NCBI GenBank assembly: GCA_054661495.1
Contig: BAAFSQ010000133.1
Coordinates: 1 to 27,310, forward strand
Origin: Zygophlyctis sp. KS116
Taxonomy: Eukaryota > Fungi > Chytridiomycota
Length of the DNA stretch: 27,310 nucleotides
Reading direction: 5' to 3'
Part shown: one piece after another, positions 1,433 through 26,560 of the stretch
How positions within the stretch are numbered: the stretch's first letter is position 1
Layout of the letters: each line of letters opens with the position of its first letter
Translations under genes and position numbers: made by a program
The notes under the pieces: model-generated
Database searches by the model: none
The model's input: only the letters and a program-made list of their open reading frames with translations
What the model was told of the DNA's origin: nothing

Positions 1433-1493
1433 ACATTGTCAACAACTGATGGAGCATTATCTCCGAAGACAGAGGCTTTAGTTTCATTTTCGA

Positions 1494-2860
1494 CTATTCT
1501 TGATAGTGCATCTGCCGTTGTTTATTCCCAGGTACGTAGGTCATTTGGGGCATACAATATTCGATCTCTTCTAGCCAATTCCAAATTCTCGGCTTGGGAT
1601 CCTTGAGTCCTTTGGCCCAAGTCAATGGTCGATGATCAGTGTGGACAATTATTTCTCTTCCCTCGATATAACATCTAAACTTCCTGAGACATAATAATAC
1701 TGCATAAAGTTCTCTTTCTGTCGCGGGATATTTCTGTTCAGTAGGTGACAATTTGGAGTAGTAAAAGGCAATGGGCCTATGATCTTTGTGTATTTTTTGA
1801 GTGAGAATACCACCGATTGCGAATTGACTGGCGTCTGGCCATATATGAAATTCTTTTGAAAAATCAGGCATAATAAAGACAGGCGCAGATATCAAAGATC
1901 TTTTTAACTCTTCGAAAGACATTTGGCATTTCTCGTCCCAACAAAACTCCTTATCCTTTTTAGTGAGATCAAGCAGTGGCAGGGCTATCTTGGTAAAGTC
2001 TTTAATGAACCTTCTATAGTAGTTCAAGAGTCCAATAAACGAGCGTACTTCAGTGACGGTTTTAGGAACTGACCAATTCTGAACCACATCTATTTTTTCA
2101 GGATCTGGTCGGATTATTCCTTCAGATACAATGTGACCCAGATAGCTAACTTCTGTTTTAAAGAATTGAGACTTTTTGAGGTTGATAATCAACCCATAAT
2201 ATTCTAATTTCTGGAAAACTTTTTGCAAATGTTTTTCGTGTTCTTCCTTGCTAGATGAGTAAACTAAGATATCGTCAATATATATCACACAAAAATCATC
2301 TATAAATTCTCCAAGCACGAGATTCATTACTCTTTGAAAAGTCGATGGAGCATTACAGAGACCGAAAGGCATAACTTTGTACTCAAACTTTCCATATCTG
2401 GTGTTAAAAGCTGTCTTTTCACATCCATTTGAATCTGATGGAACCCTGATTCAAGATCAATAGTACTGAAGAAACTTGATCCACCTAGCATATCCAATTT
2501 ATCATCTACTCTTGGGATTGTGTAAGTGTCTTTCTTGGTAATTCGATTCAAGGCTCTGTAATCAACGCACATTCTGAGACTGCTATCTTTTTTTTAACCC
2601 TATCTTTTTTTCTTGCAAATATCACTGGGGCCGCCCAAGGCGATGCGCTCGGGCGTATTATGTCGTTTTCAACCAACTTTTTGAGCTGTTTATTAACTTC
2701 TTCTAGTTCCTTAGGTAACATTCTATACGGGTGTTTCGAGATTGGATTTGCACTTCACTCTGTTACAATCTTATGGCATCCCAAATCTTTAAGTCTTTTC
2801 TTCTTCTCTCCGCTGGATGATCTTGAATTATCAAACACAGTAGGAAAATCCTTCTTGATA
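1494..2860 (-). pseudogene. Gypsy reverse transcriptase and RNase H, frameshifted
   Basis: [65 protein letters not shown]. Confidence 0.95.
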
Positions 2861-2869
2861 CGAACGAGA

Positions 2870-6224: not shown

Positions 6225-7305
6225 TCTCCTCCCTCACTTAAATCTGGCGTATCCTCTGAATCATGTATAGATTGGCTATGCACTGAATCTCTGACTCTGT
6301 TGCCATAGTAAAATTGGCTAATATCTTTTGAATCATAGTGTCGCAAGTCTTCTTGGTGAACTGTGGATATTTGTCCATCTGGCAGTATCAATTTATATAA
6401 AGAGATGTCTAGCACTTCGTCTATAATATAAGGACCTGTGTGTCTATATCTAAGAGCCTTTTTCGCATGATTAATTCTAGTGACAAAACTACCTGGAAGA
6501 AAAACCTCGTCGATAACATCCTCTCCTTGATTTACATTTGCATCCTTGATCTAAGGTATGCTGTGGCTTGATTCTGTCCCAATTCACCAAGCTCTCTAAT
6601 AGCATATTGCATCCTGTCGTCAAAATTATCGAAATCAAAAGTTGCGGGATGTGCTAAATCACCAGGCATCCGGGCATGCATTCCATAGAGCAAATAAAAA
6701 GGGGTCTCTTTCGTAACATCTTAGGGTTAGACCCTATTTTTAAGATTTCTGTGCATCCTTTCTACCATACCATTTGTCCTAGGATGGTATGAACTGGTAG
6801 GCAGATGTTTAACTCCCAATTCTGATAAGTACTCTTGAAATACTCCTTTTGTAAAACAGAAGGCTCTATCAGTGATCAAAGACTGAGGAACTCCATACTG
6901 AGATATGATCTCTTCAAAAAGGAACCTCAGAGCAACTTCCCCCGACCTGGAATTAGCTGGCCTAACTACAACCCATCTGGTGGCATAATCTATGGCAGTT
7001 ATGATATTGGTATTTCCATTTCTACTCGGCGTGAGATTCTGGATAAAATCTATGCCCCACCCCTCGAACGGAAGAGGCGTTGGCTCGATAGGGTGGAGAG
7101 GCGCTGGAAGCTGTGACTTTGACTTATGGAGCTGACATTTTCTACATCCTGCAACGAACAATCGGATACTATGACCCATGATGGGCCACCAATATTTTCT
7201 TTTTACTATTTCATATACAGATTTCGAAGCCATATGTCCCAACACCTCGTGGTTTTGACCAATGATAGAATCTCTATGGTCAGAGAGTATAAAAGGTAGC
7301 GTAGA
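6225..7305 (-). pseudogene. Gypsy element C integrase, internally deleted
   Basis: HEVLGH...CRKC, WGIDF, ITDRA, SYHPRTNGMVER, TPFYLLYG, TGPY. Confidence 0.92.
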
Positions 7306-8410
7306 TTCCCTCCCTTCCTCATCTCTTGCAAGGAGGTCTCCATTCATATAAAGTTGTACTAATTGGGTTACCTTTTTCGATGATAGTCTGTTCCTTCTTT
7401 TTGTATGAATGAAATCATACATGCTCCAAACACTTCAGCGGCTGCCTGAGATGTTGGAATTGCCAAAACAATTTCAGCTGCTTGGAAGAGAACTGGATAT
7501 TTTCCTATTCCTAATTTCTGCCAAAAATATAGAGCGGTATTTCTTTTAATGAACTACTTTTCTTTTTCCGAGGGGTATTGCATATCCTGATTGAATCGAG
7601 TAATTTCATCGTCAATAGCCTTAGAATCTAAACAAAGTTTTTTTTCTGATAGTATGAATTTCTTTATTTGTTCATCGGTATCAAGAATATCATCATCAAT
7701 CATCCCCCTTCCGCCAGCAGTCTTTGGATCCAAATAGAAAGCAAATGCCATAGATGGAGTATGCAGAAATACCCATCTGTTATATACCAACTGAAGAATC
7801 TCTGGATAATGTTCGTATGCTTGCATAAGCTCCAAAAAAGAGCGGTAAATATCGGAAAGGTTTGAGCCATTTGATTCGAGCCTTCCAATTATCTTCGACG
7901 TAGGTCTTAAAACTATTTCACAATCATGAATGTCTGTCCAAAACTTTTCATCAGTTATTGTCTTTAAAAAGTTTTCTTTTTTCTTTTTAGATTTATCCTT
8001 GGCAGATTCTTTGATTTGTTTGAATGTATTACTAAGAACTAATCTTTGTAACGCTCCCTTATTGTGAATCACTCGAGACACACAGCGATGGTGAGTATAC
8101 CATCTTGTTTCCCCCACATATTCCAACTCTAATTTTTTTGATAATTCACCCTCTGCGACCATATTTTCCTGAATCTTCCTAAATCTGAAGACTAAAAGAT
8201 TCTTCTTTTTTACAAATTGTGTAATTTCCCTGGCCTTTAATAGCATTTCACGGTAAATAGGCAAATGACAAATGTCCTTTACTAGAAGATTAATTGTATG
8301 GGCTCCACATCCATTCATTATCAGTCCTGGATATTTTTCTTCCAGTATGTCCCAGGCCGCTCGCATGTTAGAAGCGTTGTCTGTAACAACAGATGCAACC
8401 TTATCTATCC

Positions 8411-8440
8411 CTAAACTTTGTCAGTAAAAGTCTATCTTAC
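8411..8440 (-). other. 30-nt spliceosomal intron in the hAT transposase
   Basis: GTAAGATAGACTTTTACTGACAAAGTTTAG. It has an in-frame stop, and removal gives EPILKIG/IDKVASVVTDNASNM. Confidence 0.85.
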
Positions 8441-9007
8441 CTATTTTTAAAATTGGTTCTTCAATTCCACGAGCGATTGCTTCACCAGTTTGAGAGGTTT
8501 CACCGGTTTGCACAGCATCTATTAAGACGGGCTTTAATTTTGGAGTAACAGCCACGTAGTTCATCATGTGTTCAGCCCTTTGATTTGACCAACCCAAGGC
8601 TGATATATTTAGAATTCTTTAAAACTTCATCCACTTCTGATGCCAGTTTTGTATGTGCTTGTTTAAGCAGCCCATTGGCAATCAGCTTAGCAGATGGAGG
8701 TGCATATGATGGTCTTAATAATTTGATAGCGGCCCGAAAAGCATGATTGTCTGCAAAGTAAAATGGTACACTCATATCATAAAAACATTTTGCTATAGCT
8801 TCATCCAGTGCCATTTTTAAAGATTCATTTGTTTGGCTGACCCAATTGACTAATCTTGACTGGGACTGCGATAGCTGAGAGGCAGATTCTGAAGGGGTAA
8901 CATCGCTTCCAATATAGACAGTATTAGTTTTCTGCTTTTTAGAAGGCAGCTCATGTAAGAGATTTTCTGGAAAATCGTTGCAATTAGTTTTAAAATGAGA
9001 AACCCAT

Positions 9008-9033
9008 CTGTCTATTTAAAGTTAGGAGCTTAC
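9008..9033 (-). other. 26-nt (or 22-nt) intron in the hAT BED finger
   Basis: GTAAGCTCCTAACTTTAAATAGACAG with CTAAC branch point. Removal gives CRYCAQILPPNKDR/WVSHFKTNC. Confidence 0.75.
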
Positions 9034-9278
9034 CTGTCTTTATTAGGTGGTAATATTTGGGCACAGTATCTGCAATAGATAACTCTTTCTTTAGAAATTC
9101 CTTCAGTAGTAATATGTTTCTTTAAGTCTTTCATTTTTTACTCAATTTTTTTAATTAAAAAATCCCCTACGCGTACATATTGGTTGGATATTATACAGTA
9201 TAGTAAAAAACTTAGTGTATAATTATACTGTATAATTTGTATAATTTAACTATACGTATATTTTTTGGGCGAACCCTA

Positions 9279-9597
9279 GTCTATACCGGTATCGACCTCC
9301 CAAGGGACAGGCAGATCTATTAACATCCTTCCGCATAAAATGGGCGAATCACAAGCTGTGGAACTGGTTCCTTCGACTGTGAAATTATTTAATTGAATTT
9401 TATGTATACTATTGGTTTCTTTATAGATCTTACAGTCGTCTTTAAACTCCCCTGCCTCTTCCGCATGCCAACCGAGACGACTGAGGATTTGCTATTGAAA
9501 TGGACCAATTTTCCAGATTCGTTTGTAGAACTTTTAGAATGTGTCCTTTTGACCAGTGTCCTGAATTTGGTATCAGATTTGGGGCAGTGTCCCACCT
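9279..9597 (-). pseudogene. Gypsy gag-end/protease start fragment, interrupted by the hAT
   Basis: Reads ...GHCP... then LCGRMLIDLPVPWEVDTG immediately before the hAT TIR. Possibly the 5' part of element C. Confidence 0.55.
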
Positions 9598-9869
9598 AGC
9601 CAGACTACAGACTAAGTGTTTAGATTGATTAGTGGCTTTAATGCTTTAATTACTTTAACCGCTTGGAAGGTTAGGACAGATTTAGATTAATCATACAGTT
9701 TGTTGCATAACCTAGATTTAACACTAAAACTAGTAGATTTGATTTATAGATTTCAAGAAAGATAATAAATTCACTCAAATAGACAATTAGACTAATTTCC
9801 ACGAATTTTATTCAAAATTGAAGATAAACCACTAAAGAAAGAGAATAAGTCTCCCTCCGAGAATGAATT

Positions 9870-11439
9870 TGACCCTAGACTCTACTTCATCTAAATGTTG
9901 TAACCATGAATCGGGAGGACTGACGTCACCAGACAGCCGCGGATTCACCCCAAATAGTAAATAGAAAGGAGAAAAATTAGTGATAGCATGAGTTCTTACA
10001 CGGATATCTAACACTACCTCGTCCAAATATTCATCCCAGCGATTAAATCTGGTAAACCCACAGGGCGCTGATTCCCTGATTTAACATGGAGTGCATTCTT
10101 TTAATCAATCCATTCGTAGCCGGGTGATACGGCGGGTTAGCCCCGTTATCCCCGCCCTGGCTTCCTGTAGCATCATCCGCTAGTCCTTTTGAAGAGTTTC
10201 CAAGTTTCATTTCCAGTAAAGATGATCGAAAAACATAATTTGATCTACAGGCGACTGAATGTCGACTTTGCTGCTTGCATGAGAAGCAGCGATCCTCTTT
10301 TCTTAAGCGAGCTTGTTCTTCTAAAGACAATCTTCCAAATTGCACTCCTTGCATTGGAGAAGGTCCTGAATTACTAAATGAAGGACGGACTATGGGGCGG
10401 TTCTGGAAAACAATAGAATCTACTTGAACAGCCATTTGTTCGATCCTATCCAAAGAACAACCATCATCTAAGTCTTTCAATAGTACTTCTTTCTTCACTT
10501 GATCCTTTAATCCATTTATAAAGTAGGTCTTGGCCTCTCCTTCAGAAATGTCTCCTATCTCTTCTAACAAATCTCGAAATTTCACAGAATAATCCTGAAC
10601 AGACGTTCGTTGTTTCAATCCAGATATCTTTCTACGAGCTTCCTGGGCAACATTAGCGGGTGAAAAGTGACCGACTAAATCTTCCAAGAGGGAGTTTTTC
10701 TTGGCTACGTTTCCAGCGATTAAACCATGTATCAGTTGGTCCAGTCAGAAATCCTGCAATTATATCCACTTGTATTTGCGGGTCTAAATTGGGAATACAG
10801 CGGATATATCTCTCCATTTTACGGCTAAACTCCTTAGCTTTATTCCCTTTTCTATTTCCATCAAATTTTTCTGGTCGAGGAATGAGCTTATGGTCTAATC
10901 CTCGGAAACCTGTTTCATGCACCGGCAAAGGAGCTACTACCGGTGTGTTAGGCCGGCTCATTTCACTTCTAAGGTGACTATTTTCAACTTTCAAATTTTG
11001 AAGTCTGCTTATTTACTCATGAATCTGAGCTGGGCAAAGTATTTATATCCATATCCATTTTCTTTCTTTCTCTTATTTTCTTCTACTATATCTCTTCTTT
11101 CTTCTCTAATCTCTTCTTCGATTTTCTCTTGTCTAACCCAATGTAAAATCTTCACTTTTTTTTGTGCTAGAACCCTCTTATTATATTATATAATCTATAA
11201 CTTTCGTAGTCCTCAAGAAACCTTAGTTCTTAGTACAAAATTTAGACTCTATTACCTTAGTTCTAAGTACACCTAAGAACCAAGCATTGATCAATCAAAC
11301 AAATACTAACAAAGCACCCAAAAGAAAAGCGCACAAGCATTAAAGCGTTAAAGCAGTATCATCAACAAAGACCAGAAACTAAAACCAACCTAAATCAGCA
11401 TTAAACAAAACCTTAGCAGAAAAACATCAAGACCCAACA
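9870..11439 (-). mobile_element. Ty3/Gypsy element D (related to A): 5' LTR, gag, and a small integrase remnant
   Basis: gag LIPRPEKFDGNRKGNK matches A (VIPRPEKFNGDRKGNK). It is fused to PYHPATNG...RWDEYLD...SPFYLLFG. Protease, RT and RH are deleted. LTR about 11142-11439 (TGTTGG...TTTACA). Confidence 0.9.
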
Positions 11440-11981
11440 TATGTGTTGCGTCTTAAGGACTCAACTCATGGATAATTTATATGCTTATCTCTATTTGCTT
11501 ATATGATTATTAGGGTTCAGTGCTTATTACGGTTGTTGGCTTTTTATGCTTGATCGATTAATGGTTGCTCAAGTGTGGCTTAGATACTTTGTAGTTTTTA
11601 ATTCAAAGTATTTTTGGTTGTTACTCGTATTATCTACTGTCTGAGTTAGTCCAGACCGTATCATATGTTAAAATTTGCACTTTTAGATATAGTTGACAGC
11701 AAATTAGATTATCTGATTTTCAAAGAAAGAATTCAAGATCTCAATCAAATGGACAAATTCAATAGATATCGTTTTACTTCAAGATAAAACAACTAAAAAA
11801 ACTAGCCTTGCCCATCTGAACCCAAGCCGTTAAAAACCCTTGAAGATTCAACAGTTATGTTATGAAGTGATATATCATAACCTTTAATTAGCTTATTAAG
11901 TAGTCTAATTGGGTTATAATTTATATGTCTTATTACATTTATAAGCTCTCAGACCTCGGAATATTTCTTTGTACTAATTAT

Positions 11982-12058
11982 CATAATTGATATTTATACA
12001 AAGGTAAATACATAATTGATATTTATACAAAGGTAAATACATAATTGATATTTATACA
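11982..12058. repeat. Tandem repeat, 29-bp unit x2.7
   Basis: cataattgatatttatacaaaggtaaata at 11982, 12011 and 12040, inside AT-rich LTR-like DNA. Confidence 0.92.
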
Positions 12059-12441
12059 GAGTTAATTGGGTTATTTCATTAAAGACTCACATGTTACAAT
12101 TCAATGATCTTATTACTAATTATAGCCTATTAAGGGATGTTATAATCAGGCTTTACTTAAATTATGTGTGAACTTTAACCAAGTAAAAACGGAGATGTAA
12201 TGCATGATTCTTTTATTTCTTTTTCTACTTCTAATATTTTTCGGGATTCAATTATGAAACATCTATGTGCCGATCATACATCAAATTTGCTCGATTTTCT
12301 TAACTATAAAAAAGGTGACTTTTGAAACTAGTATTCATAATTGGATTATCTTAGTTTTTAGTTATCAACTAATAGCTTTCTTAATTGAGTATCCCTTAAT
12401 AATCCAGCTAATCGCAACAAGTATAATCCAATTATTTCTCC

Positions 12442-13752
12442 ATGCCTCCTAAGCGTTCAACCCGAACCCGGTTTACAAGCTTTAAATGATTTGGTGCAAT
12501 TAGTCCAGTCCTGATCGTGTGACAGCCCGTAAAGGGGCTGAAGCACAAACTCATCAACCAGAACAAGCGGTTTCCCCAGGTCTATCACAGACACTTTCTA
12601 TTTATACTGATTCTTCTTCAATTGAAAACAAAATCAAAGCATCTTTACCGGACAAATTTGATAGATCTGCTTCTAATTATGATTCTTTCGTTCAATCTGT
12701 GGACAACTTTTTAAATTCGAGTTCGCACTGTTGTCATGGTTTGGTACCTTAGTCAAAACAAAGTCTGCACTTTTATCAAATTACAGTTTATTCATGAAAG
12801 AGCTTGAAAGACTATTTTCTGATCCAAAGTGAAAGTCTTCGCCAAGGGACAGGATCTGCTCTAGCTTACGCTTCCAAATTTCGAATTCTTGCAATCGACA
12901 GTGGATCGCTCTAATGGCCGCTTTTAAAAATGGTCTGAAAGAAGAAATTAAGGACATTGGTTCCCGTTGTGCAATAATTCAAAAATTACAAATCCTGAAG
13001 TCACTTCTCTCGGAAAAGATGGATCATTATCATGTGTTTCTTCTGACTTCTTGTTTCAAAACTTCAATTTAAATGCATTTTAGGACTCCCTGGATGACTA
13101 AAGCTCGACCAGTAATCAACTGGGACACATTAACTATCTCTTTAAATAATCAGATTTCAATCGCTGCTATTAATCCAGAATCTATTCCTATAAAATATCA
13201 AGAATTCTCAAACATCTTTAACCCAAACAATGCGGTATCCCTGCCTCCTCTTCGATCTTTGGACATGGAAATTAATCTCAAAGACTATTCTAAACCTCCT
13301 AAGAAACAACCAATTTATTCATTATCTTTAAAAGAGCAAAACAGTCTTAAGGAATGGATTGAGGTGAACTTAGATCAAGGACTAATCCGGCCTTCAAAAT
13401 CAGAATATGGAGCCCCTATATTTTTCGTTCCTAAGAAAGATGGAACATTGAGACCTTGTATTGATTATCGAGATTTAAATCAAAACACTTAGCTGGACGT
13501 TGATCCTTTACCACTTATTGCACAGTTGATGGATCAATTGGCTCATTCTAAAATCTTTACCAAACTCGACCTGCGCGGAGCCTATAACTTAGTAAGAATT
13601 AAAGATGGTGATCAATATAAGGCAGCCTTCAGATGTAGAGACGGACACTATGAGCCTAGGGTTATGGTTATTCAATTTGGTCTTACCAACGCCCCTGAAG
13701 TTTTTCAACGCTTTATGAATTCTATCGTTCAAGATCTTCTAGATAAGTTTGT
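12442..13752 (+). mobile_element. Ty3/Gypsy element E (Tf-like): gag, protease and RT remnants
   Basis: LPDKFD, YASKFRILA, FKNGLKEEIKD, GTPWM...[53 protein letters not shown]. Truncated before YxDD. Confidence 0.92.
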
Positions 13753-13779
13753 AGGTCCCACTCTCGATTGAACATCACT

Positions 13780-14795
13780 TCCAGATTATTTTGTCTGTAA
13801 TTTCCTTCATAGTAGTATTCAGAATCAAATTCGTTAAACGGAGCAATATAATAAGGATTTACGGGAGTATCAGTACCATTCTAGGCGGTTAACCTTCGAC
13901 CATCAGGTCGTATTAAGAAATATGTGTTATAAGGACCTTTATCTGCTACATAAAATGGGCCGAGAAAGCGAAATTTGAATCTTGTACGACTATGATTTAT
14001 CATCTTTACTACATCACCTAATCGATATCTTGCATCAGAGACTCCCAGTTTCCTATCATAGTAAGATTTCATCCGGATATCGAGTTTGGATTTTCTGCAG
14101 TGCTGCAGCTCAATTTCGACCCAAACGAGCTAATTCTCTTTCTGTAAGTGTTGCAACATCGCCTGAATTATTCAAATCATAAAATCCTGGTAGAACAGCT
14201 GGTAATTCATCACCGGGTAGTCTTGGTTTCATTCCATGCGATAAATAAATAAAAAGCTGAGAGGTTTTTAAGTAAGACAGTGTGACTGTAAACCAAGATG
14301 TTCCCCTATCAATAAGATCCCCCAATATTGAGTTCATTAAAGCCTGAAATGTACCAGGAGCATTTTTTAAGCCAAAGGGCATCACCAAGTATTCAAAATG
14401 ACCATACTTAGTACGAAAAGCAGTGAGATATTTCTGATTTTTTGTAATTCTTATAAGGTTGAAAGTACATTTCAAGTCTTTTTTTGAAAAATACTTTGAT
14501 CCATTAGCTCGAAACAACAAATCCCGTATTATAGGCAAGGCCGCACGATTAGTTTTTGTGACAGACCCATATGATTTCTTAACAAACATGACCGGAGCAC
14601 ATGCTGATGATGTGGACTCTCTAATTATTTCAGCAGCAAATGCCCCATCCTAATGTTTCTTCAAAAACTTTTCCTCCTGTACGCTGATAGAGTAGATTGG
14701 CCCAAACGGAGCTGATTTCCCTTCTAATAAGTCAATAGACAAATCAACTCCAACACGGTGAGGAGGAAGATCAGTGAACTCTTTCATAGAAAATA
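13780..14795 (-). mobile_element. Ty3/Gypsy fragment F: RT fused by deletion to the integrase C-terminus
   Basis: LPPHR...[25 protein letters not shown], then [10 protein letters not shown] and FLGPFYV. Confidence 0.9.
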
Positions 14796-14804
14796 CTAAC
14801 CCTA

Positions 14805-15466
14805 GTCAGAGAACGCACAGGCTATGGAATATCGAGTAGATCTGTCCACTGCAATAAGGATCTAGGTCTTGCCTCCTGAATAAAGTCCAAGTGCCATGTG
14901 TAAATAGGAACACCTGGATCTGGCAATGGATTCATGGGAGGAGACCGAGGGCGAGTAGATGTATTATTTAGCTGACAATTAGCACAAGATTTACAGTAAT
15001 TTTTATATCCAGTCCTTTTATTCGGCCACCAGAAGCGAACTTAAAGTGATGGAAAAGTTGCACGGACTCCTAAATGTCATAGTGTTTCATTATTCTCGCG
15101 TCATCTTTAAACGAGCCGCTGTCTGCAAATATGGAACAGCTACCATTTGTACATTAAACCTCAACCCTAAATGATGTAATTGCGCTCTGAATCCGAAAGT
15201 TTGCGTAAGAAGAATGCAATAGGTTTAAATGTCCACTCTTTTCAGAGTACTGATGCAACGCAGCGCCAATCGCGAAATTTGATGCATCACAGAAAAGGCT
15301 CTTTGCGATCCGGTAATTTAATCGTTCTTCGTTAGACAGTTTCTTCAATATTATAAATGCATCCTCACAATTTGCAGACCAAATAAACTTAGAATTCTTC
15401 TTTAATAACTTAATGAGCGGCTTGCATGTTTCGGTATACTTAGGAATGAAAGTCTTATATAAATTT
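14805..15466 (-). mobile_element. Ty3/Gypsy fragment G: RT connection/RNase H start joined to the integrase N-terminus
   Basis: FIPKY...LLKKNSKFIW, CDASNFAIGAAL, then CANCQL, WHLDFIQ, IAVDRSTR. Confidence 0.88.
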
Positions 15467-15599
15467 GGTTAGGGTAATATTGGTTATTTAGGGTTAGGGT
15501 ATACTATTCAAAATTCAGTATTTTACTTGCCCTTAAGTATATCTTTCTTAACCTATCTTTCTTTCAATTTGAACCACATCCGTGATCTTTTTGGCTCGA

Positions 15600-16300
15600 A
15601 TTTAAATGCTGGTCGTTTGTAGCATACAGCTTCTCATATGGAATATCTGTTTTCGTGATTTCAGATATAAATTATATTTTAGTAATACAATGACTTACCT
15701 TACTAAAAGCATCACATGAAACGTGTGCTACTGCCTGTAGAGAAGCGTACTGTCTGAGCTGAAATAATGAAAAAGAATATAGCATGGATGCGTCAACAGG
15801 ACAAAATTCTGCCTGTAGTAATATAGATTTCTTTAATTATTGTTCACAAATTTACCAATGTTCTCGACAGATAGATTTGCATATATCAAACTAAACTTCT
15901 TGTAGAAGTTCCATACTAAATGAATCTGCTGTTTTCCAAGCTGTGCTCCCAGTAACCCTAACCTTTTTAAATTTACTGCGGCAGATTTAAAATTGGAAGT
16001 ATTCAATTTTTTGAGCAGTATTCATTGTAAGCACAATAAATTTCAAATTCATTAATAGTCGACCATCTTTCATCCTCTTTCTCTTTTCAATGAAGATTCT
16101 TTCGCGAGCACATCGTACCTATATTGGTACTCCTGGTCAAATAATGCTGCTTGAAATGCGGCCTCTTCCCGCCAATATGACTGTAAAGCATCATTACTGA
16201 TATTTTCATCAGTTTCGTTTCGATTAGAAAAGCTCGATATTAATATATTCAATTTGATCAAATTGGACTTGTTTCATATCTTCTTTCTGAACTGCATTAG
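15600..16300 (-). pseudogene. Degraded intron-containing gene, weakly resembling the CxC N-terminal region of KDZ (Kyakuja-Dileera-Zisupton) transposases
   Basis: ICKSIC...LLQAEFCP...FSLFQLRQY..L......SCDAF. Candidate 25-nt intron at 15855-15831 and GTAAGT donor at 15698. Pattern recall only. Confidence 0.3.
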
Positions 16301-16474
16301 GAAATGTTGACATGTGTCGATCAACTATTAGTGCAAGATGCTCTTTTCCCGTACTTAAAAATTGTCTGCGATCAGGGCTGAATCGTATTCACAAGTGCAG
16401 TTAGTGACTCAAATTATATCTATTCGGATATAATAAGCCTTTTGACAATATTTTTTATTGGGTTATAATCTAGC

Positions 16475-16530
16475 TAGAAATGATGAATAAACAAAACTAA
16501 ATTAGAAATGATGAATAAACAAAACTAAAT
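16475..16530. repeat. Perfect 28-bp tandem duplication
   Basis: tagaaatgatgaataaacaaaactaaat at 16475 and 16503. Confidence 0.93.
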
Positions 16531-17833
16531 CTCTTGACTGGTATACGAACTTTAACCTTGGTGAAAAGAAAAAAGGTACTGGGGCTCTCACTTCTTATAA
16601 ACTATTTTGGGCAAAATTTGCTAAACAATTGAGGCCAAAGTACGGCACTATGGTGGCAGAACAAAAAATTCACCAAATACGCTGGGTAAGGTTCTAATAT
16701 TAATGAATATATACAAGAAATTGAAAAATTATTAGCTCTTACGGCATCTAATAAACCTTGAATCATCATCAATAACTTCATGTATATTCCTGATGTTTCC
16801 CAGTGAGAAGAGCAAATGCACACGTTACATAAAGCCGCGTAACTTGGTTGTACGTTCTAAGTACTATGAATCCATCAGGGGCGGTTTTAAAAGTTCCATC
16901 AAGGAAGCAATGACTATTAATCTTAAATCCGCACGCCCCTCCGCAGACATCCATAAAATGATTGCATGTAACTCCTTGTCTATCATAAATTTGGCATATT
17001 CCCGAAACATTGGCAGCCCTTTTGAATCATTGCAATCTGGAGGTAAGCAGATTCTAATTAGTGAATCACTAGTATCTAATTTACGAATTTTATCTACTGT
17101 AAACGCTAGTTTTAGAGGGTATAATATAAGCAGAGTCACTGTAATTCTTCTGTAAATCAGATAATATTTCCTGGTATATGTTAGAGCGGTTCTTTGAAAA
17201 ATTCTGACTTAGACTTGCAATCTATCCTCAATAAAATCATCTCCTTCAGCTGTAGTGGCACTCTTCTCTTCAATAGGATTTAGACGTGCATCGTAATGTG
17301 GAGTTTTCTCTGTAACTACCCCTTGATGAACCCATAATGAAGCAGAACATTTTTTCCTTTTTACTTTGAGCAGTGCCATCTTTCGGTTACCTTGTTACTC
17401 AACACACCATTTTAAGAAAGTTTTTTTGTTTATGAATAAGGCTTTTTGAATTTCCCTCGTGCTCTTTTTCAGAGGAGCTGTTGTATTCTTGAAGCACTTG
17501 AAGCATTAGAGATATATAACACAAATTATAGTACAAAGAAGAAAAAAGTCAAATGAGCTAACCCTAAAAATCAGTTTATTTTATTTTTAGAAGAAAGACT
17601 TTTACCGAACTAGTTCCATTTATAATTCGTAAGCCCGAGGGTTAGCGGGCTACAGGACCTTATGTCATTTTACCAATTTAAAAGCTGCTAAAGCTACTCA
17701 AAGGGGGTAATAGGACTATTCGGTGCTCGACACGGTGCTCCTCTTAAATTTGTGGATTGTTTTACAGGGGAGAGATTGGCATATGTAGATTTGCTTTTAA
17801 AAGAATTCATTCAAAGGAAAAGCTCTCTTAAGA

Positions 17834-19225
17834 ATGAGTAGTAGAATTACAAGATCAAGATCAGTTCAGCCTAGACGATTACCAAGAGCAGGAGAAGGTT
17901 TAATTCCTAACAAAAATGTTCCCGACGCAAGCCCTAGCAATCCCGACGCAAGCCAAAATGTTCCCGACGCAAGCCCTAGTCTTCCCGACGCAAAATTTGG
18001 AACTTCAAGCTACTTCGTTCTAGTTGCGAAAGAAGATTGGAATATTCTGCCACTCTCGAAAAAAATTACTTATCAATTGTGGAGCAAATAGAAAAACATC
18101 TAGTCGATATTCTAATTCAAAGACAACACACTGAATATAACGTGTATGAAATTCAACAGTCAATAATTAATAACTTATGGGAAATGATTATTAACTGGAT
18201 CGAAACCGCACTGAAAAAGTCCTGTGAAAAAAAGAAAACAATTCAATGTATCTGATATATTCTGTACACCTGATCTTAACCAGCAGAAAAATCAGATAAT
18301 GTCAGATAATTCTTATATTCTTTACAAACGCTACTGCAAAAATTTGGCTAAAAGAAAGAAAGCACTTTATCTTGAAATGATTTCAGAAAAATCAGGAGCT
18401 TGAAAACGTGGAGATCTCTTCAAATTGATTAAATCAGGCAATAGAAAAAAAAATGCTTTCTCAATCCAAAAATTTGCAAAAGCATACTGGATATTTTTTG
18501 CAAACCTTTGACAAGCTACCGCAAGGAGATAGCTCAATTTTTGATTCAGAAATTCTAGAGTCTTCTAATCCCAAAGAAACCAATAATTGTTTGGACGAAT
18601 TATTATCGATCAACTATGAAGATGTAGAAAATTCTCTGAAAAAATTAGCTAATGGAAAGGCCCCTGGAGCTGATAGTTTAATTGCAGAAGCATATAAATT
18701 CGGAGGATAGGCAATGATATATGTTCGAGCTTCATTCTTCAATATGTGCGCAAAAACTCAGCTAACGCCTTCACCATGGAATGAATCAATTATAATACCA
18801 ATCTTCAAAAATAAAGCCTCTGAAACAAAAATTAAAAATCACGGACCAATCGCTCTCACGATTGTAGGAAAAAGAATCTTTTAAAAGATCATTGATTCAA
18901 AACTTTAAAATTACAAAGATATGCTATATACTTTTCAAGGAGGATTCTTTAAAAAATCCATTCTGCATCAAGTATATTATCTAATGGAGCTTCTGATTTA
19001 ATTCAAGTATTTCTGGATTTATCTGTAGCTTACGATAGGGTTAAATTTTGTGGACTTTACTTGCAAAGCGATTTAAAATGCCAGGGTTAGACTTCTAAGA
19101 TCACTCTTTGATTTTAATTACAGCAGATTAAATATCTCTGGAACTAAATCAGAAAAAGCATCTACGTGGTTAACCTCAAGGGTCTTCACTCTCACCAATT
19201 CTTTTTAATCTTTCTATCGACACTC
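17834..19225 (+). mobile_element. Non-LTR retrotransposon (LINE-type) RT remnant
   Basis: GKAPGADSL, WNESIIIPIFK, PIALT, FQGGF, FLDLSVAYDRV, PQGSSLSPILFN. Many stops and deletions; truncated before YADD. Confidence 0.9.
17914..17993 (+). repeat. Coding minisatellite, about 21-bp unit x4 (PDAS repeats)
   Basis: tcccgacgcaa at 17920, 17941, 17962 and 17983. Confidence 0.88.
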
Positions 19226-19259
19226 TTTATTAAAAACGAAATTCCCCAACTTATTGTTG

Positions 19260-20570
19260 TTCAACTAAAACTGATGTCCAAATACCTCATCCAGAAATTA
19301 GAGTTGATTTTATAACGTTGGGGCAAGTGCTGCTTAAGAAGGATCGTCTCTTTCGGAAAGAAGTTTCTTGCAAACAGGGTGCGCATAAGTGCATTTCGGT
19401 CGCTCTTACTGATTCGGGATCTATGTAATTTGGCTACACGGACTATGATTTGGCGGTAGAGCATAAACTTATTTTGGTACACCTAGAACAAGTAGTAGAG
19501 GTCAAAGTAATCGATGGAAAACCTTGCGGAAGAATCACTCATAAAATCAGCCTGTATATTAAATTAGAACCACATTGTGAACAAGCAGAACTTTATTTAA
19601 TTAGTTCCCCAAAAAATCCAGTAATTTTGTGTCTAGATTGGTTGCGTTTGCATAATCCGCAGATAGATTTTATTTCCGAGCTTTAAATGTGATCGTCAAA
19701 AAATTGGGACCCTGTATGATAGCACTACAGCATGGGACCCGCAAAGGCAGCTTATGCAAGAAACGCATTTACAGGAGAGAAATTACTTAATAGATTGCTT
19801 GAAATGTTTTCAACAGTATTTTCGATTTAAGAATTTCCTGCTTTACCGCCTTGTTGCCCCGGTATAGATCTGGATATTGAACTACTGGATGAACCGAATC
19901 AAACCTTTGGACCAATATACGCATTATCTGGAGAAGAGGAAATCGCTTTGCGTAAGTATTTAGATGTAGCATTATAGGCTGGTATCATCAAAGAATCGAA
20001 TTCCCCTGCAGGATCTTGGTCAAAATAGAGCAGATGCCCTTCAAAGATTAGGATAACAGGCTATTCGAACGAAGAACTATTATGATAAGAAAGTTGGAGC
20101 CACTGACAGCCGATACGAACCAGGAGATGTGGGAAAAATGATTAATCACGGTCTAACTAGATTCAAGCAAACAATACCTATTTTTTAATGCGACCTGATG
20201 GTCGAAGATGATCTGGTCAAAATGGCCCAGATACTCCAGGCAATCCGGATGATTTAGCCCCATTTACAGATTTTGATGCAGAATATTATTATGAAGGAAA
20301 CTCTTCTTAAGTTGAATGCGATTTCGTGCTGGGTTTAATCAATATCCCCAGAGGTTTTTCTTTCGTGAACGGCTTAAGCAGGGGGTGATGTTACGTTCTC
20401 ACTTCTCATTCCTCAATTCTTATTAACTCACATTATTCAATTCTTATTTATTCATATTATTCAATTATTATCTAATCCTATGAAGATAACAAAGAAATTT
20501 AATCATCAAAGTCGGAGTCTTTATAAACCAAATGGAGCGGAGTCGCGTATCGCTCTTTGTTCTGAAAACA
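19260..20570 (+). mobile_element. Ty3/Gypsy element H (related to F): gag end, protease, RT start, large deletion, integrase C-terminus, 3' LTR
   Basis: VILCLDWLRLHNPQIDF, GPIYALS, SNSPAG fused to LGQNRADALQRL, RPDGRR. PPT AGGGGG followed by TGTTACG at 20389. Confidence 0.85.
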
Positions 20571-20599
20571 ATAAATTCTTACCCAAAAGAGTCTCCTGT

Positions 20600-21960
20600 T
20601 GTCTTTGTCTATTGTTGAGAGTTACTATATTCCTACTTCCAATAATCCAATAAAACTAAAGTAGTATTTACAACTTGAAAAGCCTATAAGAAGTCACTGC
20701 CTGACAGTACACTCCCCTTCACTCACGGTAAAGATTAAAGCTTATAAAGCACTAATGCAGAAGACTTGCCCGGAATGACTTTGAGCTGATTTTAACTTTG
20801 GGAACTAATAAAAGGCGCTAAATGATTAGCATTTACTGGGTGAGGTTCCAATTGTCCATTTAGTTTCTTTAAAATATATGAATCATGAGGTCCTGCACTT
20901 TCAATGATAAAGGGACCTTCCCAACGAGGAGCTAACTTTGGGATCATCTGATTATGGAGTCTTTTTCGAATTCTTTTCACAAATTGTCCGGGAGTAAATC
21001 TGTCGGCAATAGTCTGGTGAGTTCGGTCGTGAATCTTCTGAATTTCGAAAATTAAACAGTCGAGGTGGGTCGATATGCTGGGGAGAAAAATAACTAGCTC
21101 TGTCAGTGATTATGCGGGCAGGGACACCAAAACATAGCTGATGCAAAATTCTTGACATGCAAAAAACTTAACCCTGACCCTGAATCTCTATAAGAAAATG
21201 CAGAAGCGACAGAAAATCGATCGGTCAACAGCAATCAATATCTGGCTATTTCCCATAGCTGTTGCGGGCAAATCTTGAATAAAATCGATATGCCAAGTAT
21301 GAAAGAGCACCCCAGGATCAGGCAATGGGGTCTAGGATACGGTCTTGGCTTAGTGGAGGTATTATTCAGTTGGCAAACAGAACATGACTTACTATAGCGC
21401 TCATAGTCTAGCGGATTCCAGGCCACCAGAAACGAATCAGTAATGAAGAAAATGTGGCTCTTTAGAAGTGACCCAAACTTTCGTGCGTCTGTTTCATTAT
21501 TTCTTGCGGTGTTCGTGATATAAGTACGGTACAGCCACAATTTGAGAGTTGCATTTTACTTTACGAAAGAGCTGTCCATGTTTAACATAAAATGAATCTT
21601 GCTCTTTGTGAATGCGGCTTTAAAATTGTTTTGGTAAATAAGTAGGGTTTGTTTTAGATGTCAGGAACCCATAAATAAAAATGGGCCATATTTGATAGTA
21701 AGTAGAAGCAGGATCCGACAATGCTTCTTGTATTTAAGTGGTTTAGGGTGCTTGTCCTTTCCAGAGCAGAGACAAACAAACTAGAAGGAAGTAGCTTTGT
21801 TTCTTGTGGAGAAGAATTCAAATAATCTTTCCTGAGAGAAAGAGCGTCAGCTACGACATTCTGAGACTCTGGAAATGGTGAATTTTAAAATCGTAGTCTG
21901 CAAAGAATTGTTGCCAACGTGCCTGTCGTTGGTTGAGTTTTTAAGAGCATTTAAAGTAGG
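20600..21960 (-). mobile_element. Ty3/Gypsy fragment I (related to B): RNase H end, integrase remnants, PPT and 3' LTR
   Basis: RQARWQQFFADYDF, CSVCQL, FGVPARIITDRA, RWEGPF...HPVN. PPT GAAGGGGAG followed by TGTCAGG at 20706. Confidence 0.85.
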
Positions 21961-21964
21961 TAAG

Positions 21965-22663
21965 ATTATCGTGATCAGAATAAATAGTTATAGGAATCGC
22001 AGTACCAATCAGCAAATGGCTTTTTTTAGCTCAGTAAGTTTTATCCTTTTTTTAAGGTTTAGGCCTATGTTTTTTTATTGAAAACTACTTTTTATACTAT
22101 CAAGCTATTAATAGAATCCTTTTTATGCCTTTTCACTTCACGATCTGATCTTCCAAAGTTCACTTCAACACTCCCCCGAACGAACTTTGCAACAAAAATC
22201 TTCTGAATTTTGTAAATTTCGTAACGTCTAATGCCTTGGTGAACATATCGACAATATTTTCATCGGTGCTTCTATACTTCAGCTTTATCGCTTGCATACG
22301 CTCTGATAAATGATAATGTAGCTCCCAAATGTTTCGACCCTTCTCTAATAGATTCTTCTCCAATCTAATGACTGGTCTGCAGCATGAATTTCTGCTTCGC
22401 ACGATGAAGTAGACGATATAGGTTGCTTTTAGCTTTTCCAATGTATCAAATGTCCATTTAAATAAATGCACAATCCTGTTGTAGATATTAATGTGTCATC
22501 ATCTCCTAAATATGAAACATCCACAAAAGCTTCCAATACCATTTCTTGTGGTTCTTTTTCTCTTTTTAAATATTCCAGACCAACATCTCTATTATGGAAT
22601 AAATACCTTAATGTCCTCCGAGCACAATTCCAATGAGCCAAAACCTCAACAACCTTGGTGCAA
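21965..22663 (-). mobile_element. Ty1/Copia 3' fragment (RT end, RNase H, PPT, LTR)
   Basis: HWNCARRTLRYL, LEAFVD, STTG...IHWKS, ENIVDMFTKAL. GGGGGAG followed by TGTTG at 22170. Confidence 0.88.
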
Positions 22664-22669
22664 CTAACC

Positions 22670-23003
22670 ATACTTCTCATAGATCAGGATATCATCTATG
22701 TAGATATAAACCCCTCTTCCAATAATATCTGAAAATAGCTGATTCATTACATCCTGAAAACGACCCGGATCATTCTTTAAACCGAAGAGTATCACTTTAC
22801 CGAATTTGGTGATAAATTTTGATAAATCTTCGGATCCTTGAGTCAAACGTAGCAAATTAAATGCGCCCTTTGGATCGATTGTTGAGTATAATGGTTGGAG
22901 CTCTGACTGTCCTCCTAATGATGCTTATACATCCTGAATGTCCGGCAATATGGCTTGGGTAGATACAATGACTTCATTTACTTTCCTGTAGTCTACACAT
23001 AAC
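22670..23003 (-). mobile_element. Ty3/Gypsy RT fragment
   Basis: CVDYRKVN, IDPKGAFNLLR, FGLKNDPGRFQ, YIDDILIY. Confidence 0.88.
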
Positions 23004-23529
23004 AAAATTTAAAATTCAGATAACTGATTTTTTTATAATTTTTCCAGATCCTTTTATTTTTTCACCCTTTACTATTTATACCAGTCAAATTTTTAATCAC
23101 TTGATACTTCTATATTGTTCCGTTTAGAATTGTGGCTGAACATTATTGGTTGTGCAGGAACAAACCTTAACCGAACCTTTAAAATCTGACACTCCCCTTA
23201 ACATTAATGATATTTTGCAGATATATTAAGGGTCGGAAAATTTATTAAGGTGAGTCCGAGACTTGGTCCAGAGCCAAATATCTCAGGTTTAGGACCACAC
23301 ATAAATACGCCCACACACAGTAATTTAGATAGATATCTGATTCAGAGAAGAATTATCTGATTCAGAAGACTAAAAGAGTAAAAAATCGAAATTCATTTTT
23401 TTATTGTATCGTTCATTTGAGATATTTGAGATTTCTGATGTCATAAATTTTATCGAGCTTGAGTAACTGGAAAATAGAATCACATAGATTTCTGACAGAC
23501 CTATTTCCTCGGATTTCTTCCAGAAAATC

Positions 23530-25900
23530 AATTGCTCTCCCTTCCTCATAGCCATAATCTTTCTTTTTAATACAAATTTAATTACCGTCTGTTAATTTGC
23601 GAATTGCTTCATAGAGAGGCTTTCGCCGATTAAAAAACCTAGTTTCTGATTCTGATCTACACCAAGAATTCTTCTTTTCTAACAGAGGAGCTAAATATCT
23701 ACTATACTCACACCAAGCAGCTCTAACAGTATTGATTTTTCTGTCCATTGTGAAGTATTCTACACCTCCAAGATTGCTTGTACTATCTTTCCCACAATTA
23801 TCTTGAATAGTATTAGTAGACAGCTGTTGCGTAGATTGAGAAGACGACTGCATTTCATTTCCCAATCTACTCAACTGTTGTCCCATTGAGAATTTTTGCC
23901 TCTCCAGTGCGGCATCTAAATCTTCAGCAAAAGCTTTCATTTTTCTATCATATACCCTTCAATAAAATGGAATATCCTCTGATTTCAGAGAGCTGCTCGG
24001 ATATCACTGGTACCACTCTTTCCAGCTCTAAATTTTCAGGAGTTTTGGCGCTTTCACATTCTTGTAAAAGTTTTTTTTGGTAATCTAAGAATTCTAATGA
24101 TTTGAAGATCCATTCTTGTAAAAGTTTTTTTTGGTAATCTAAGAATTCTAATGATTTGAAGATTGGATTTTGAAAAATTGTGTGAGATTTATACTTTTCC
24201 AAAGTAAGTAATACAGCGGCATCTTGTAGAACTATTAGCCTCATATAATCAATTAATTCAAAGAAATTGTTTCCTATTTTTTTAAATCAAAAAAAGTACC
24301 TGCCAAATCCATAGAAGCATCTGAATTTTTAAATTTCACTTTCTCCCTGATAAAATCAGGAAAAATTAGATTGACCAACGCAGCAGGAGGCTCCACGTTG
24401 GCTCTTGCTACATAATATCTATTTCTTTCTGGACCAAAACTATTAAATTATAATTATACATTTTTTACCCAGCTGAACATCTCACAGCTTGCCATGGAAC
24501 GCAGTGGTTGGCGTACGCTCCATTCCTAGGGCCAGTAGACCAACCACCGTGCTTGTCGACTGAAGAAGCACTGGCACCTTTGTTTTTGAGGCCTGCAGCT
24601 CGTTTTCTGCCTGTTTGAGTTATAACAGAAGTTACAATATCAGGTTCTTTGAACTTTTCTTTTAATTTTTTATGTTGAGTGGTGTAAGTTAATTGTGAAT
24701 TTTCTTTTTCGCCCTCCAAAGCCCATATGTCATACCTAGATATTAGATTTTAAGTACATATATACCATAGAATCTTTTTAGAAAAATCCGGCGTTCTAGA
24801 AGGTGTAAATCGCGCAAAAAAATAGAGCGCGATTGCTCCAAATGGAAATTCTGTCACATCCATGTGTCTATAACTTAATGAACTCCTAATTTTTTATCTT
24901 AACATTCCAGTTTCTTGTATATTTCCAAATTGATTTTTCTACAAATTATGGCTGTATAAAAATTTACCTTGGACTTTCTCCAGACTGTTCGAAATAAATG
25001 GGCACCCTTCGGCCCTTCTGCTGGGAAATATTTAACACCTATATCTGAGATGTATAAATTTCTCAGTTGGTCTCCTCGACTGCATACTCCATAGGACATC
25101 ATGAAATCCGCGCGAAATTTTAAGCCGTCCTACCTTTAAGCTTGTACGCACTTACCTCACAATTCTGATTCCAATACGCATAGCAAACGTCTTTCAATGC
25201 TCCATCTGGAATTTCATCAATCATTGTGCCTTTTTCTCGGTCTTTATGTGATTTATTCTCTATTTCTACCATTTGTTTTTTTTTATTTTTGAGTAATTGC
25301 TTGACTAATTCTGGTCTGCAAGGTGCTGGTCCTGTAGAGCCTGAAAGCTATAATCAAAAAAAATATGGTTACCATATGTAGATTTTTCCAATGATTTACA
25401 ATTGCATTCGCATATTGTTCTAATAAATTGTATCCACATATTTTGAGCTCTGGCGGTGGTGTTGCTACAAGTAATTCTTGTACAGAAATCGAATTAGGTA
25501 AAGCAGGTCGTTGGGCTTCTTCACTCACTTCGATGTTTCCACCATCCGCAGATTTTCTTTTCCTGCCTCTCTGTCTTGGAGGTCTGTTTTGAACTTCCTC
25601 GCTCAAGAATCTATGTATGTTTTGTTTGTTATTTCATTTGGTCTGTCTGGATACTTTACTTTACGCAAGTTCTTTTCTTTTAGTTAAAGTAACATACCAT
25701 AAATTCAACAACTTTTGGGTCATAACATTTTTTATTATTTGATGCAGTATACTGCCGAGTTTGCATATGAGTGGCCATTGCATGCCTTTGTTCTTCTAAT
25801 CTATTGTCAGCAGCTCGTATAAGCATGCCCTGTACTATTATAGTAGCTGTTGGAGATGCTTGAGTTTCCATTTTTTGAGAAGTAGGCGCGTGCTTCAAAA
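23530..25900 (-). mobile_element. Crypton (CryptonF-like) tyrosine-recombinase transposon gene with Ndc10-like YR domain and C-terminal GCR1_C domain, pseudogenised
   Basis: After removing 8 mini-introns: DREKGTM, SRGDQLR (Arg), KSKKNQFG (Lys), LRHMDV..FPFGAIALY, TQTGR (HxxR with H to Q), GGW, AY, AGF..Y..R..VEPP..L..IFP, LQDAA. GCR1_C-like MDRKINTVRAAWCEY...W...FFNRRK. Frameshifts near 23945 and 25615. Confidence 0.88.
24057..24163. repeat. 54-bp in-frame tandem duplication
   Basis: Duplicates IFKSLEFLDYQKKLLQE; copies start at 24057 and 24111. Confidence 0.93.
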
Positions 25901-26049
25901 TTCCCCTAAAACTCTAAAATATTCGAAATAAAATTCTCTTCAATAAAGTTATTCGGGATATTTTTGAATAAGCATGAGGACCGGTCTGAAACCCGCGAGC
26001 CTAAACCCGCGTAACCTCGGCGAAAAAGCCGCGCTCGGTCCGGACCAAA

Positions 26050-26560
26050 AAATTTATATTTATAAACTTTTCAAATTGAGAACGTCCAAGTGGCTTTGTC
26101 ATTATATCTGCCACTTGTTCATCTGTAGGAAAATATAGCAGATTGATCATCTTGTCTCGTTTAGCTTCTCTTATAAAATGATATTGAATAGCTATATGCT
26201 TCTGCAACCCTAACCCTAACGCAGACTATATTCTTTCGTGGTCTTTAAATATACCAACATCCTTTTTGGTGCTGGTTTTGTTACATATTTACTCAACAGG
26301 TTAACTGCGTATGTAATTTCAGGTCTAGTCTGTCTAGAAATATATAAAAGGCTTCCAATTAACGATCTAGATGGTACTTCTCCTCTTATAATTAAATCTT
26401 GTGCTAACCCTTCGTGATTCTAGCCTATCTTTGAACAAATTTCCATAGGTTTGTATTTGTCTTTGGCATCATTGACTTTAAATTTTCCTGCCAAGTTTTC
26501 AAAATAATTTTTCTGACTATGATATATATAATTTTCTGTAACCTTTAATTACAATGTAAG
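26050..26560 (-). mobile_element. Ty1/Copia RT/RNase H fragment with internal deletion
   Basis: TPME-like PME, RSLIGSLLYI...TRPEITYAV, KRMLVYLKTT, then KHIAIQYHFIRE, EQVADIMTKPL. Confidence 0.9.

Follow-up and report, generated by a model that had tools for sequence, protein, structure and literature searches.

Short telomeric-type tracts at rearrangement junctions in a transposon graveyard of the chytrid Zygophlyctis sp. KS116, and an apparent skew in the register of their 3′ ends

The insertion of telomeric sequence at sites of break repair is a kind of event already known from mammals, whose interstitial telomeric sequences were inserted at break sites exposing a few nucleotides that match the hexamer (PMC2246262). 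In primates, rodents and horses these insertions consist of several exact hexamer units, are sometimes accompanied by deletion or duplication of the flanks, and have telomerase as the proposed enzyme (Nergadze et al., PMC2246262; Santagostino et al., PMC7215372). During human neotelomere formation, or chromosome healing, telomerase extends a non-telomeric 3′ end, aided by microhomology to its 11-nt template, which yields a terminal telomere with loss of the distal arm (bioRxiv 10.1101/2022.10.31.514589). In Pyricularia, internal two-unit motifs are over-abundant, occurring at about 2–6 per Mb; these telomere-like motifs and MoTeR relics are tied to rearrangement and end-joined deletions and are explained by internalised telomeres and by retrotransposons that target telomeres (PMC8381367, PMC7367193). 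According to the literature, the chromosome ends of chytrid fungi carry TTAGGG (PMC9926174).

Here we analysed a stretch of 27,310 nt from Zygophlyctis sp. KS116 (contig BAAFSQ010000133.1, hereafter the window). It is a graveyard of dead Ty3/gypsy, hAT and Crypton-like transposon pieces with almost no internal DNA repeats, and Rfam and tRNA scans of it were empty. Searches for further loci returned four distant matches of 33–34% identity from a metagenome scan and no match from a scan of a viral collection, from exact look-ups of three window ORFs or from two cluster look-ups. The closest named relatives share no more than 38–58% identity, and the argininosuccinate lyase on a linked contig has its nearest counterparts in chytrid and zoopagomycete fungi. 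The region is contained in the sequencing runs SRR35555750 and SRR35554702. An unrelated metagenome contig, L007, carries TAGGGTT motifs clustered within a repeated unit.

A tract was defined as a perfect TTAGGG-period run of at least 8 nt. Fifteen such runs, 8–15 nt in length, were observed in the 27-kb window against 2.6–3.5 expected, eight on the plus and seven on the minus strand, so that about 2.6 of the 15 are attributable to chance. In a comparison of 300 hexamer units TTAGGG ranked first as an outlier (Poisson p = 4e-6) and was the sole unit strongly over-represented, while plant-type TTTAGGG gave three independent short runs in the window, which is not significant. The excess of TTAGGG-period tracts is genuine. 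Shorter runs in the window were at chance (7-mers, 7 versus 8.2 expected) or below it (6-mers, 23 versus 34). AGGGTT is common to all 15 tracts, and 12 of them have TAGGGTT. Related contigs with a total of 54.5 kb, some of which bear intact members of these transposon groups, contained only two runs of at least 8 nt; tracts sought in intact relatives were not found, and genic contigs from related organisms (37 kb) lack them as well.

Judged on related copies (about 70% DNA identity) and not on an orthologous empty site, two tracts are absent from otherwise collinear sequence, namely at 6721, where 14 nt (6721–6734) stand in place of the 86 nt kept by the intact relative L004 in the DNA alignment, and at 2595, where a net 17 nt were inserted. 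The former tract, TTAGGGTTAG at 6721..6730 on the plus strand, lies at a deletion in an integrase gene that is also seen in the alignment to protein P0003. Relative L004 gives no match to the hexamer that could serve as priming microhomology there. A possible second cap, TAGGGT on the minus strand at 6731..6736, opposes this tract head-to-head; alternatively, its GGGT may be native sequence. The latter tract, TAGGGTTA at 2595..2602 on the minus strand, lies in the reverse transcriptase of a Ty3/gypsy copy. A 5-nt filler, GGTTA (2595–2599), is placed there between the two copies of a 12-nt direct duplication (2583–2594 and 2600–2611), and the alignment to protein P0073 stops at residue 433 and restarts from 433 in another frame. 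At this site, the only one where a priming match can be read from the sequence, the last three bases of the upstream duplicate (TAG) match the repeat, and the filler continues them in register. The 6721 tract is present in assembly L002 and the 2595 tract in L002 and L003; with these 2 of 15 tracts reproduced in independent short-read assemblies from two runs, an assembly artefact was ruled out.

Further tracts are located where transposon fragments meet. Tract TAGGGTTAG at 14796..14804 (minus strand; automatic breakpoint 14790) lies between out-of-order integrase (15100..14864) and reverse transcriptase (14739..14305) fragments. Fragment 15171–15466 is capped on the left by TTAGGGTT at 15163..15170 (minus strand; automatic breakpoint 15173), between an RNase H fragment that ends at 15176 (about residue 721) and an integrase fragment that begins at 15139 (about residue 940), and on the right by GGTTAGGGT at 15467..15475 (plus strand; automatic breakpoint 15465), which adjoins the RNase H fragment where it starts (15465, residue 624). 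Shorter runs occur at junctions as well. The 7-nt GGGTTAG at 10134..10140 (plus strand; automatic breakpoint 10131) joins a gag fragment running to about residue 169 to an integrase C-terminal fragment, with an internal loss of about 2.7 kb. The 6-nt GGTTAG at 22664..22669 (minus strand; automatic breakpoint 22677) marks the point where a reverse transcriptase fragment (P0073 residues 436–547 at 23008..22673) is truncated, and the 7-nt TAGGGTT at 9272..9278 (minus strand) adjoins an integrase fragment (P0073 residues 843–904 at 9476..9279) at its end, each of these two being too short for significance alone. The boundaries marked in this way are gag/integrase, integrase/reverse transcriptase, RNase H/integrase and fragment ends. 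Four of the 15 tracts lie within 25 nt of automatic homology breakpoints, where 0.68 are expected (p = 0.004), and no tract is present at about half of the mapped junctions. Read along the sense strand of the transposon, the inserted sequence is G-rich at five of the mapped junctions and C-rich at three of them. The original reading that the tracts are inserted is supported by the DNA alignment at 6721, by protein collinearity and a flanking duplication at 2595, by the positions at fragment boundaries and by absence from intact relatives. A common element surrounding the tracts was ruled out, since their flanks have no family-level similarity and the window is nearly free of repeats.

Among the other tracts, TTAGGGTT at 11510..11517 (plus strand) has flanks without recognisable homology, and TAGGGTTA at 13657..13664 (plus strand), which lies within a continuous reverse transcriptase alignment and adjoins a 6-nt tandem duplication, is probably native coding sequence that matches by chance. 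A 13-nt tract ending in GGGT (15488..15500, plus strand) follows 12 nt downstream of the 15467 tract, and an 11-nt tract at 15953..15963 (minus strand) ends in GGGTTA. Another copy of TAGGGTTA at 19036..19043 (plus strand) is followed after 39 nt by AGGGTTAG at 19083..19090 (plus strand); near the end of the window, a 15-nt tract ending in GGGTT (26206..26220, minus strand) and a further AGGGTTAG (26404..26411, minus strand) were detected. A 7-nt GGGTTAG at 11133..11139 (minus strand) has no mappable junction and belongs to the chance-level length class. The 70-nt fragment 17568–17637 has TTAGGGTTAG as its left cap (17558..17567, minus strand) and AGGGTTAG as its right cap (17638..17645, plus strand). 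In both this fragment and 15171–15466 the left-hand tract is a C-strand and the right-hand one a G-strand tract, facing outward, as would be expected of a linear fragment whose two 3′ ends had each been extended. Double caps in head-to-head arrangement were rejected as a general feature, with one case versus about 1.5 expected per window (5 + 5 nt), and so were hairpin flanks, which are not significant with offsets allowed. Two zero-offset cases remain: the perfect 6-nt inverted repeat directly flanking the 17638 tract and the perfect 5-nt inverted repeat directly flanking the 26206 tract do not follow from simple extension and ligation.

The 3′ ends of the tracts, read on the G-rich strand, had been noted to favour GGTTAG and, at mapped junctions, to avoid TAGG and TAGGG. 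All nine positions named in support of this read GGTTAG, on runs of 8–10 nt at 6721–6730, 14796–14804, 17558–17567, 17638–17645, 19083–19090 and 26404–26411 and on shorter runs at 10134–10140 and 11133–11139 (7 nt) and 22664–22669 (6 nt); three of the eight cases originally counted (26404 having been an ambiguous ninth) are therefore of the chance-level class of 6–7 nt. Across the 15 tracts, six end in GGTTAG, four in GGGTTA, three in GGGTT and two in GGGT. None ends in TAGG or TAGGG, so that this part of the observation holds for all 15, with one unmapped 7-mer (9669–9675) ending in TTAGG. Compared with simulated, randomly phased captured fragments, the 15 tracts deviate in the direction stated, but not significantly so (overall Monte Carlo p 0.08–0.10). 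Sharper tests on the same 15 tracts, which are post hoc, gave probabilities of about 0.004–0.006 for zero ends in the two G registers and of about 0.03 for at least six ends at GGTTAG. The skew exists in the claimed direction; it is statistically insecure because there are only 15 tracts, and the window alone does not establish it. Template lengths differ among TTAGGG-making telomerases, e.g. 9 nt in Neurospora and 11 nt in human. The tracts ending in GGTTAG are all at most 10 nt long, so that a single pass along an 11-nt template of the human type would suffice for each, and the three longest tracts stop mid-repeat. The bases following GGTTAG are not constant, hence there is no sign of read-through into telomerase RNA beyond the template.

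The reading we favour, to which we give an even chance, is that the tracts fill junctions left by the repair of old double-strand breaks and were formed by telomerase-type extension before joining. A free 3′ end would be extended by telomerase-type reverse transcription, usually for one template pass and rarely for a second, partial pass, and would then be joined to another end; the joining would leave deletions, a small duplication or a scrambled fragment order. Excess and junction position are observed, and that telomerase was the filling enzyme we infer. The proposal that the tracts are direct telomerase products is consistent with their single-pass size and with the two doubly capped fragments; a register bias would not exclude the capture of very short telomeres. 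The "slight trimming" that was part of the same proposal could not be upheld as stated, because it is indistinguishable from incomplete synthesis or ligation microhomology. Only tentatively do we suggest that the excess of GGTTAG at 3′ ends marks the 5′ end of the telomerase template.

It is quite possible, though short of an even chance, that the fillers are real and the register skew is sampling noise plus base composition, uninformative on the template boundary. Besides the overall p value and the post hoc character of the sharper tests, chance 8-mer runs speak for noise, as in DNA with the window's 36% GC 71% of their ends already fall into the three favoured registers GGGTT, GGGTTA and GGTTAG, and so does the shortness of the three cited cases mentioned above. 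On the other hand, the counts drop monotonically from GGTTAG (6, 4, 3, 2, 0, 0), neither G register receives any end although the two together should have about 30%, and short runs at three mapped junctions, namely 10134, 22664 and those of 8–10 nt, likewise end in GGTTAG.

We consider it unlikely that the telomeric sequence was not added by telomerase at the break, but derives from captured critically short telomere ends, fused once eroded, or from short repair-polymerase copies of telomeric DNA or transcripts arising in templated-insertion end joining. The only demonstrably recent deletion in the window, at 4848..4855, where 253 nt of RNase H coding sequence kept in assembly L002 were lost, has the non-telomeric filler TTTTAG that forms a snap-back palindrome with the flank, and this filler shows that a templated-insertion pathway operates in this genome. 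The hairpin-like contexts of two tracts point in the same direction. Moreover, natural telomere G-strand ends are also register-biased, so that the skew is compatible with the capture of very short telomeres. Nevertheless, captured telomeres should be far longer than 8–15 nt, a repair polymerase usually takes its template from close to the break, yet no unit other than TTAGGG is strongly over-represented, and the filler at 2595 runs on in register from the TAG at the primer end.

It is very improbable that a retrotransposon reverse transcriptase switched onto telomerase RNA or a telomeric transcript in the particle and back, with deleted, patched copies then integrating: several tracts do lie at internal deletions of Ty3/gypsy copies, but the mixture of G-rich and C-rich insertions at the mapped junctions fits no single RNA template, fragment order is scrambled (integrase/reverse transcriptase/integrase C-terminus) with different element groups joined, and the 12-nt flanking duplication at 2595 lies inside an element. 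Hardly more credible is a motif proper, i.e. a telomere-type Myb site with the core TAGGGTT or an intrinsic transposon part, to which the shared AGGGTT and frequent TAGGGTT as well as the clusters in contig L007 would be congenial, since a telobox-like site would be kept among copies at regulatory positions, whereas the tracts sit at breakpoints, interrupt coding sequence and break reading frames, are missing from intact relatives and from the genic contigs, and have flanks without family-level similarity.

In mammals and yeasts, telomerase is actively excluded from breaks. If each tract stems from a single telomerase pass, the enzyme acts at internal breaks far more commonly here than in mammals or yeasts; thousands of scars per genome would then be a natural archive of the points at which telomerase begins and ends synthesis on non-telomeric DNA ends, and the template boundary would be readable from genome sequence alone. 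In its widest form, which we find rather doubtful, telomerase would be a routine end-joining partner in this organism, extending most free ends by one template pass before they are joined, those of small extrachromosomal pieces (for instance, fragments of retrotransposon cDNA) included, and junk DNA would hold thousands of one-pass products that read out the template boundary. If the skew is noise, a clear but ordinary case of repair junctions filled with telomeric sequence remains, set in a transposon graveyard.

In arrays of Penelope-like and other terminal retroelements, telomeric tracts all run in the same direction, each placed behind a specific element's 3′ end. In the window, too, transposon fragments are set apart by short telomeric-type tracts, but they occur in both orientations (8 plus, 7 minus) and among Ty3/gypsy, hAT and Crypton-like pieces rather than with a telomere-specific element. 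Internalised telomeres and fusion relics are multi-unit and often head-to-head; here, the longest tract has 15 nt and there is one possible pair of 10 + 6 nt. The association with rearrangement and end-joined deletions is shared with the Pyricularia motifs (PMC8381367, PMC7367193), whereas the 27 kb of the window contain 2 two-unit tracts and 15 shorter ones, which point either way and are not accompanied by a telomere-specific retroelement. Human chromosome healing is likened to the proposed events in that a non-telomeric 3′ end is extended, but about one pass followed by internal rejoining is proposed here in place of a terminal telomere (bioRxiv 10.1101/2022.10.31.514589). The primate, rodent and horse insertions (PMC2246262, PMC7215372) are matched by exact telomeric-type units at breaks, in the form of 15 perfect runs of 8–15 nt, and by occasional deletion or duplication of the flanks. 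No flanking sequence derived from telomerase RNA was seen in the window, and unlike the several units of the mammalian insertions, the tracts comprise one to two and a half units, occur about once per 2 kb, cap some fragments at both ends and reside in a microbial eukaryote.

In the window, perfect runs of the TTAGGG period of at least 8 nt (tracts, each named by its start coordinate) occurred 15 times compared with 2.6 in first-order Markov simulations, and runs of 6–7 nt were found at chance frequency or lower. Among 300 hexamer units, TTAGGG was the strongest outlier (15 versus 3.5, p = 4e-6). Only two runs of at least 8 nt were present in 54.5 kb of related contigs, a set in which the same element groups are represented by intact copies (L004, L012, L013), alongside hAT copies (L009–L011) and two genic contigs from related organisms (L014, L015). 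Tracts 2595 and 6721 were found again in assemblies of independent runs matching the window at 99.98%; therefore, they are neither part of the transposons nor an assembly artefact. The tracts are real telomeric repair scars, unusually densely spaced and of a kind already known. Tract 13657, inside an unbroken reverse transcriptase (RT) alignment, is probably native sequence. In unrelated metagenome contig L007 (8090-8260; also L008), TAGGGTT-containing motifs cluster within a repeated unit, which looks like a motif array, unlike repair scars.

The ORFs of the window (36% GC; no match in tRNA and Rfam scans) are transposon pieces: Ty3/gypsy gag, RT, RNase H and integrase, a hAT-type DUF659 protein with a hAT dimerisation remnant, and a minus-strand ORF (23578-23940) whose GCR1_C domain is a type found in Crypton tyrosine-recombinase transposons. 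Mapping with the related polyproteins P0073, P0059 and P0168 located one near-whole Ty3/gypsy copy (152-3244, minus strand), outside of which the pieces are truncated and scrambled in order. The hAT copies in L009 and L010, from two metagenomes, are 92–97% identical to positions 7338-9160 and carry an internal deletion of 512 nt that lacks a filler; in the window, position ~7338 is where the hAT element ends, marking its plain insertion into the integrase fragment. The nearest proteins come from environmental assemblies, the closest named relatives being from Absidia (38%) and, for hAT, Aphanomyces (47%). For argininosuccinate lyase, a host gene on the linked contig L011 queried as a single first-exon ORF, the best named relatives were chytrid and zoopagomycete fungi (55–58%). 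This enzyme is 77–80% identical in L014 and L015; these contigs also carry DAHP synthase and a sequence weakly matching CatSper-beta, which suggests a non-animal, possibly zoosporic lineage. The window also contains tandem repeats at 24057-24164 (54 nt), 11982-12065 (29 nt) and 17913-17993 (21/42 nt), as well as a 47-nt imperfect palindrome (9190-9236) just past the end of the overlapping assembly L002. Nine copies of the motif ATAATCAGAT(AAT) are present (4005, 5543, 5795, 11707, 13146, 17155, 18290, 20946, 23352) compared with 1.4 expected, two of the nine lying within a 160-nt repeat pair (3966-4125 / 5756-5914).

At 6721, the window carries 14 nt, a 10-nt tract followed by ACCC, in place of 86 nt in the intact relative L004 (~70% DNA identity), which is collinear to either side. 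When the two bases that follow are included, ACCC can be read as a 6-nt opposing C-strand tract, the GGGT of which could be native instead. At 2595, the RT alignment breaks off and restarts at the same residue after a 17-nt insertion, in which the 5-nt filler GGTTA is flanked by two copies of a 12-nt target ending in TAG. Further tracts mark the boundaries gag/integrase (10134), integrase/RT (14796) and RNase H/integrase (15163), the start of an RNase H fragment (15467) and the ends of an integrase (9272) and an RT fragment (22664). When breakpoints were called automatically, based on drops in coverage, 4 of the 15 tracts were no more than 25 nt away from one, with 0.68 expected (p = 0.004). 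In fragments 15171-15466 and 17568-17637, the left end bears a C-strand tract and the right end a G-strand tract, as would be seen if a linear piece had been extended at each of its 3′ ends. Roughly half of the junctions that were mapped lack a tract; one of these, 7338, is merely the end of the hAT insertion.

At 4848-4855, a recent deletion polymorphism has removed from the RNase H coding sequence 253 nt that L002 (4375-4627), otherwise 99.98% identical, retains; its 6-nt filler TTTTAG is non-telomeric and, together with the flank, makes up a snap-back palindrome. Two tracts form the loops of perfect hairpins with zero offset (17632-17651, 6-nt arms; 26201-26225, 5-nt arms). Direct flanking of two of 15 tracts by perfect 5–6-nt inverted repeats has p ~2e-4 in a post hoc test, and no mechanism was found for these two. 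A 13-mer beside tract 19036 (19024-19036) is identical to the flanks on either side of tract 17638 (17627-17657) with a 16-nt hairpin-like insert taken out. The two junctions are 1.4 kb apart, and the match could be due to templated copying between them or to chance.

The G-strand 3′ ends of the 15 tracts were GGTTAG (6), GGGTTA (4), GGGTT (3) and GGGT (2), never TAGG or TAGGG; start registers showed no significant non-uniformity. The original prediction had taken a bias towards GGTTAG as the signature of telomerase products and of the template boundary. Its direction, a neat fall-off and the two empty registers were recovered, but the overall test against simulated telomeric fragments, placed at random phase into the window sequence and detected identically, gave p = 0.08-0.10. 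Tests picked post hoc on these simulations gave ~0.005 for zero ends in the two G registers and ~0.03 for at least six GGTTAG ends. Of chance 8-mers in AT-rich DNA, 71% end in the same three registers, GGGTT, GGGTTA and GGTTAG. Three of the eight GGTTAG cases initially counted are only 6–7 nt long, a chance-level class, although two of these three lie at mapped junctions and retain some weight. The skew is unproven and needs a genome-wide sample. All GGTTAG-ending tracts measure at most 10 nt, as would be expected from one pass on a template resembling that of human telomerase (11 nt); the three longest (11, 13 and 15 nt) stop mid-repeat, which is not significant (~0.18, calculated by hand from the counts). 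Each round of human telomerase finishes at GGTTAG. Because TTAGGG-making telomerases vary in template length (9 nt in Neurospora), the human boundary is not transferable here. The host telomere repeat is assumed to be TTAGGG, by analogy with related fungi.

Alternatively, the tracts could be captured very short telomeres or copies that a polymerase made from telomeric DNA or RNA. The mixed tract orientation and the scrambled fragment order speak against a template switch by the RT of the transposon itself. A binding-site motif is at odds with the location at breakpoints and with relatives lacking tracts. For repair by telomerase, a broken 3′ end would be lengthened, aided by a few matching bases, synthesis would halt mostly within one template pass, and the end would then be joined, by a pathway that seems prone to templated fillers. 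The simplest account is that proposed for mammalian interstitial telomeric sequences, in which telomerase extends broken ends before they are joined (PMC2246262).
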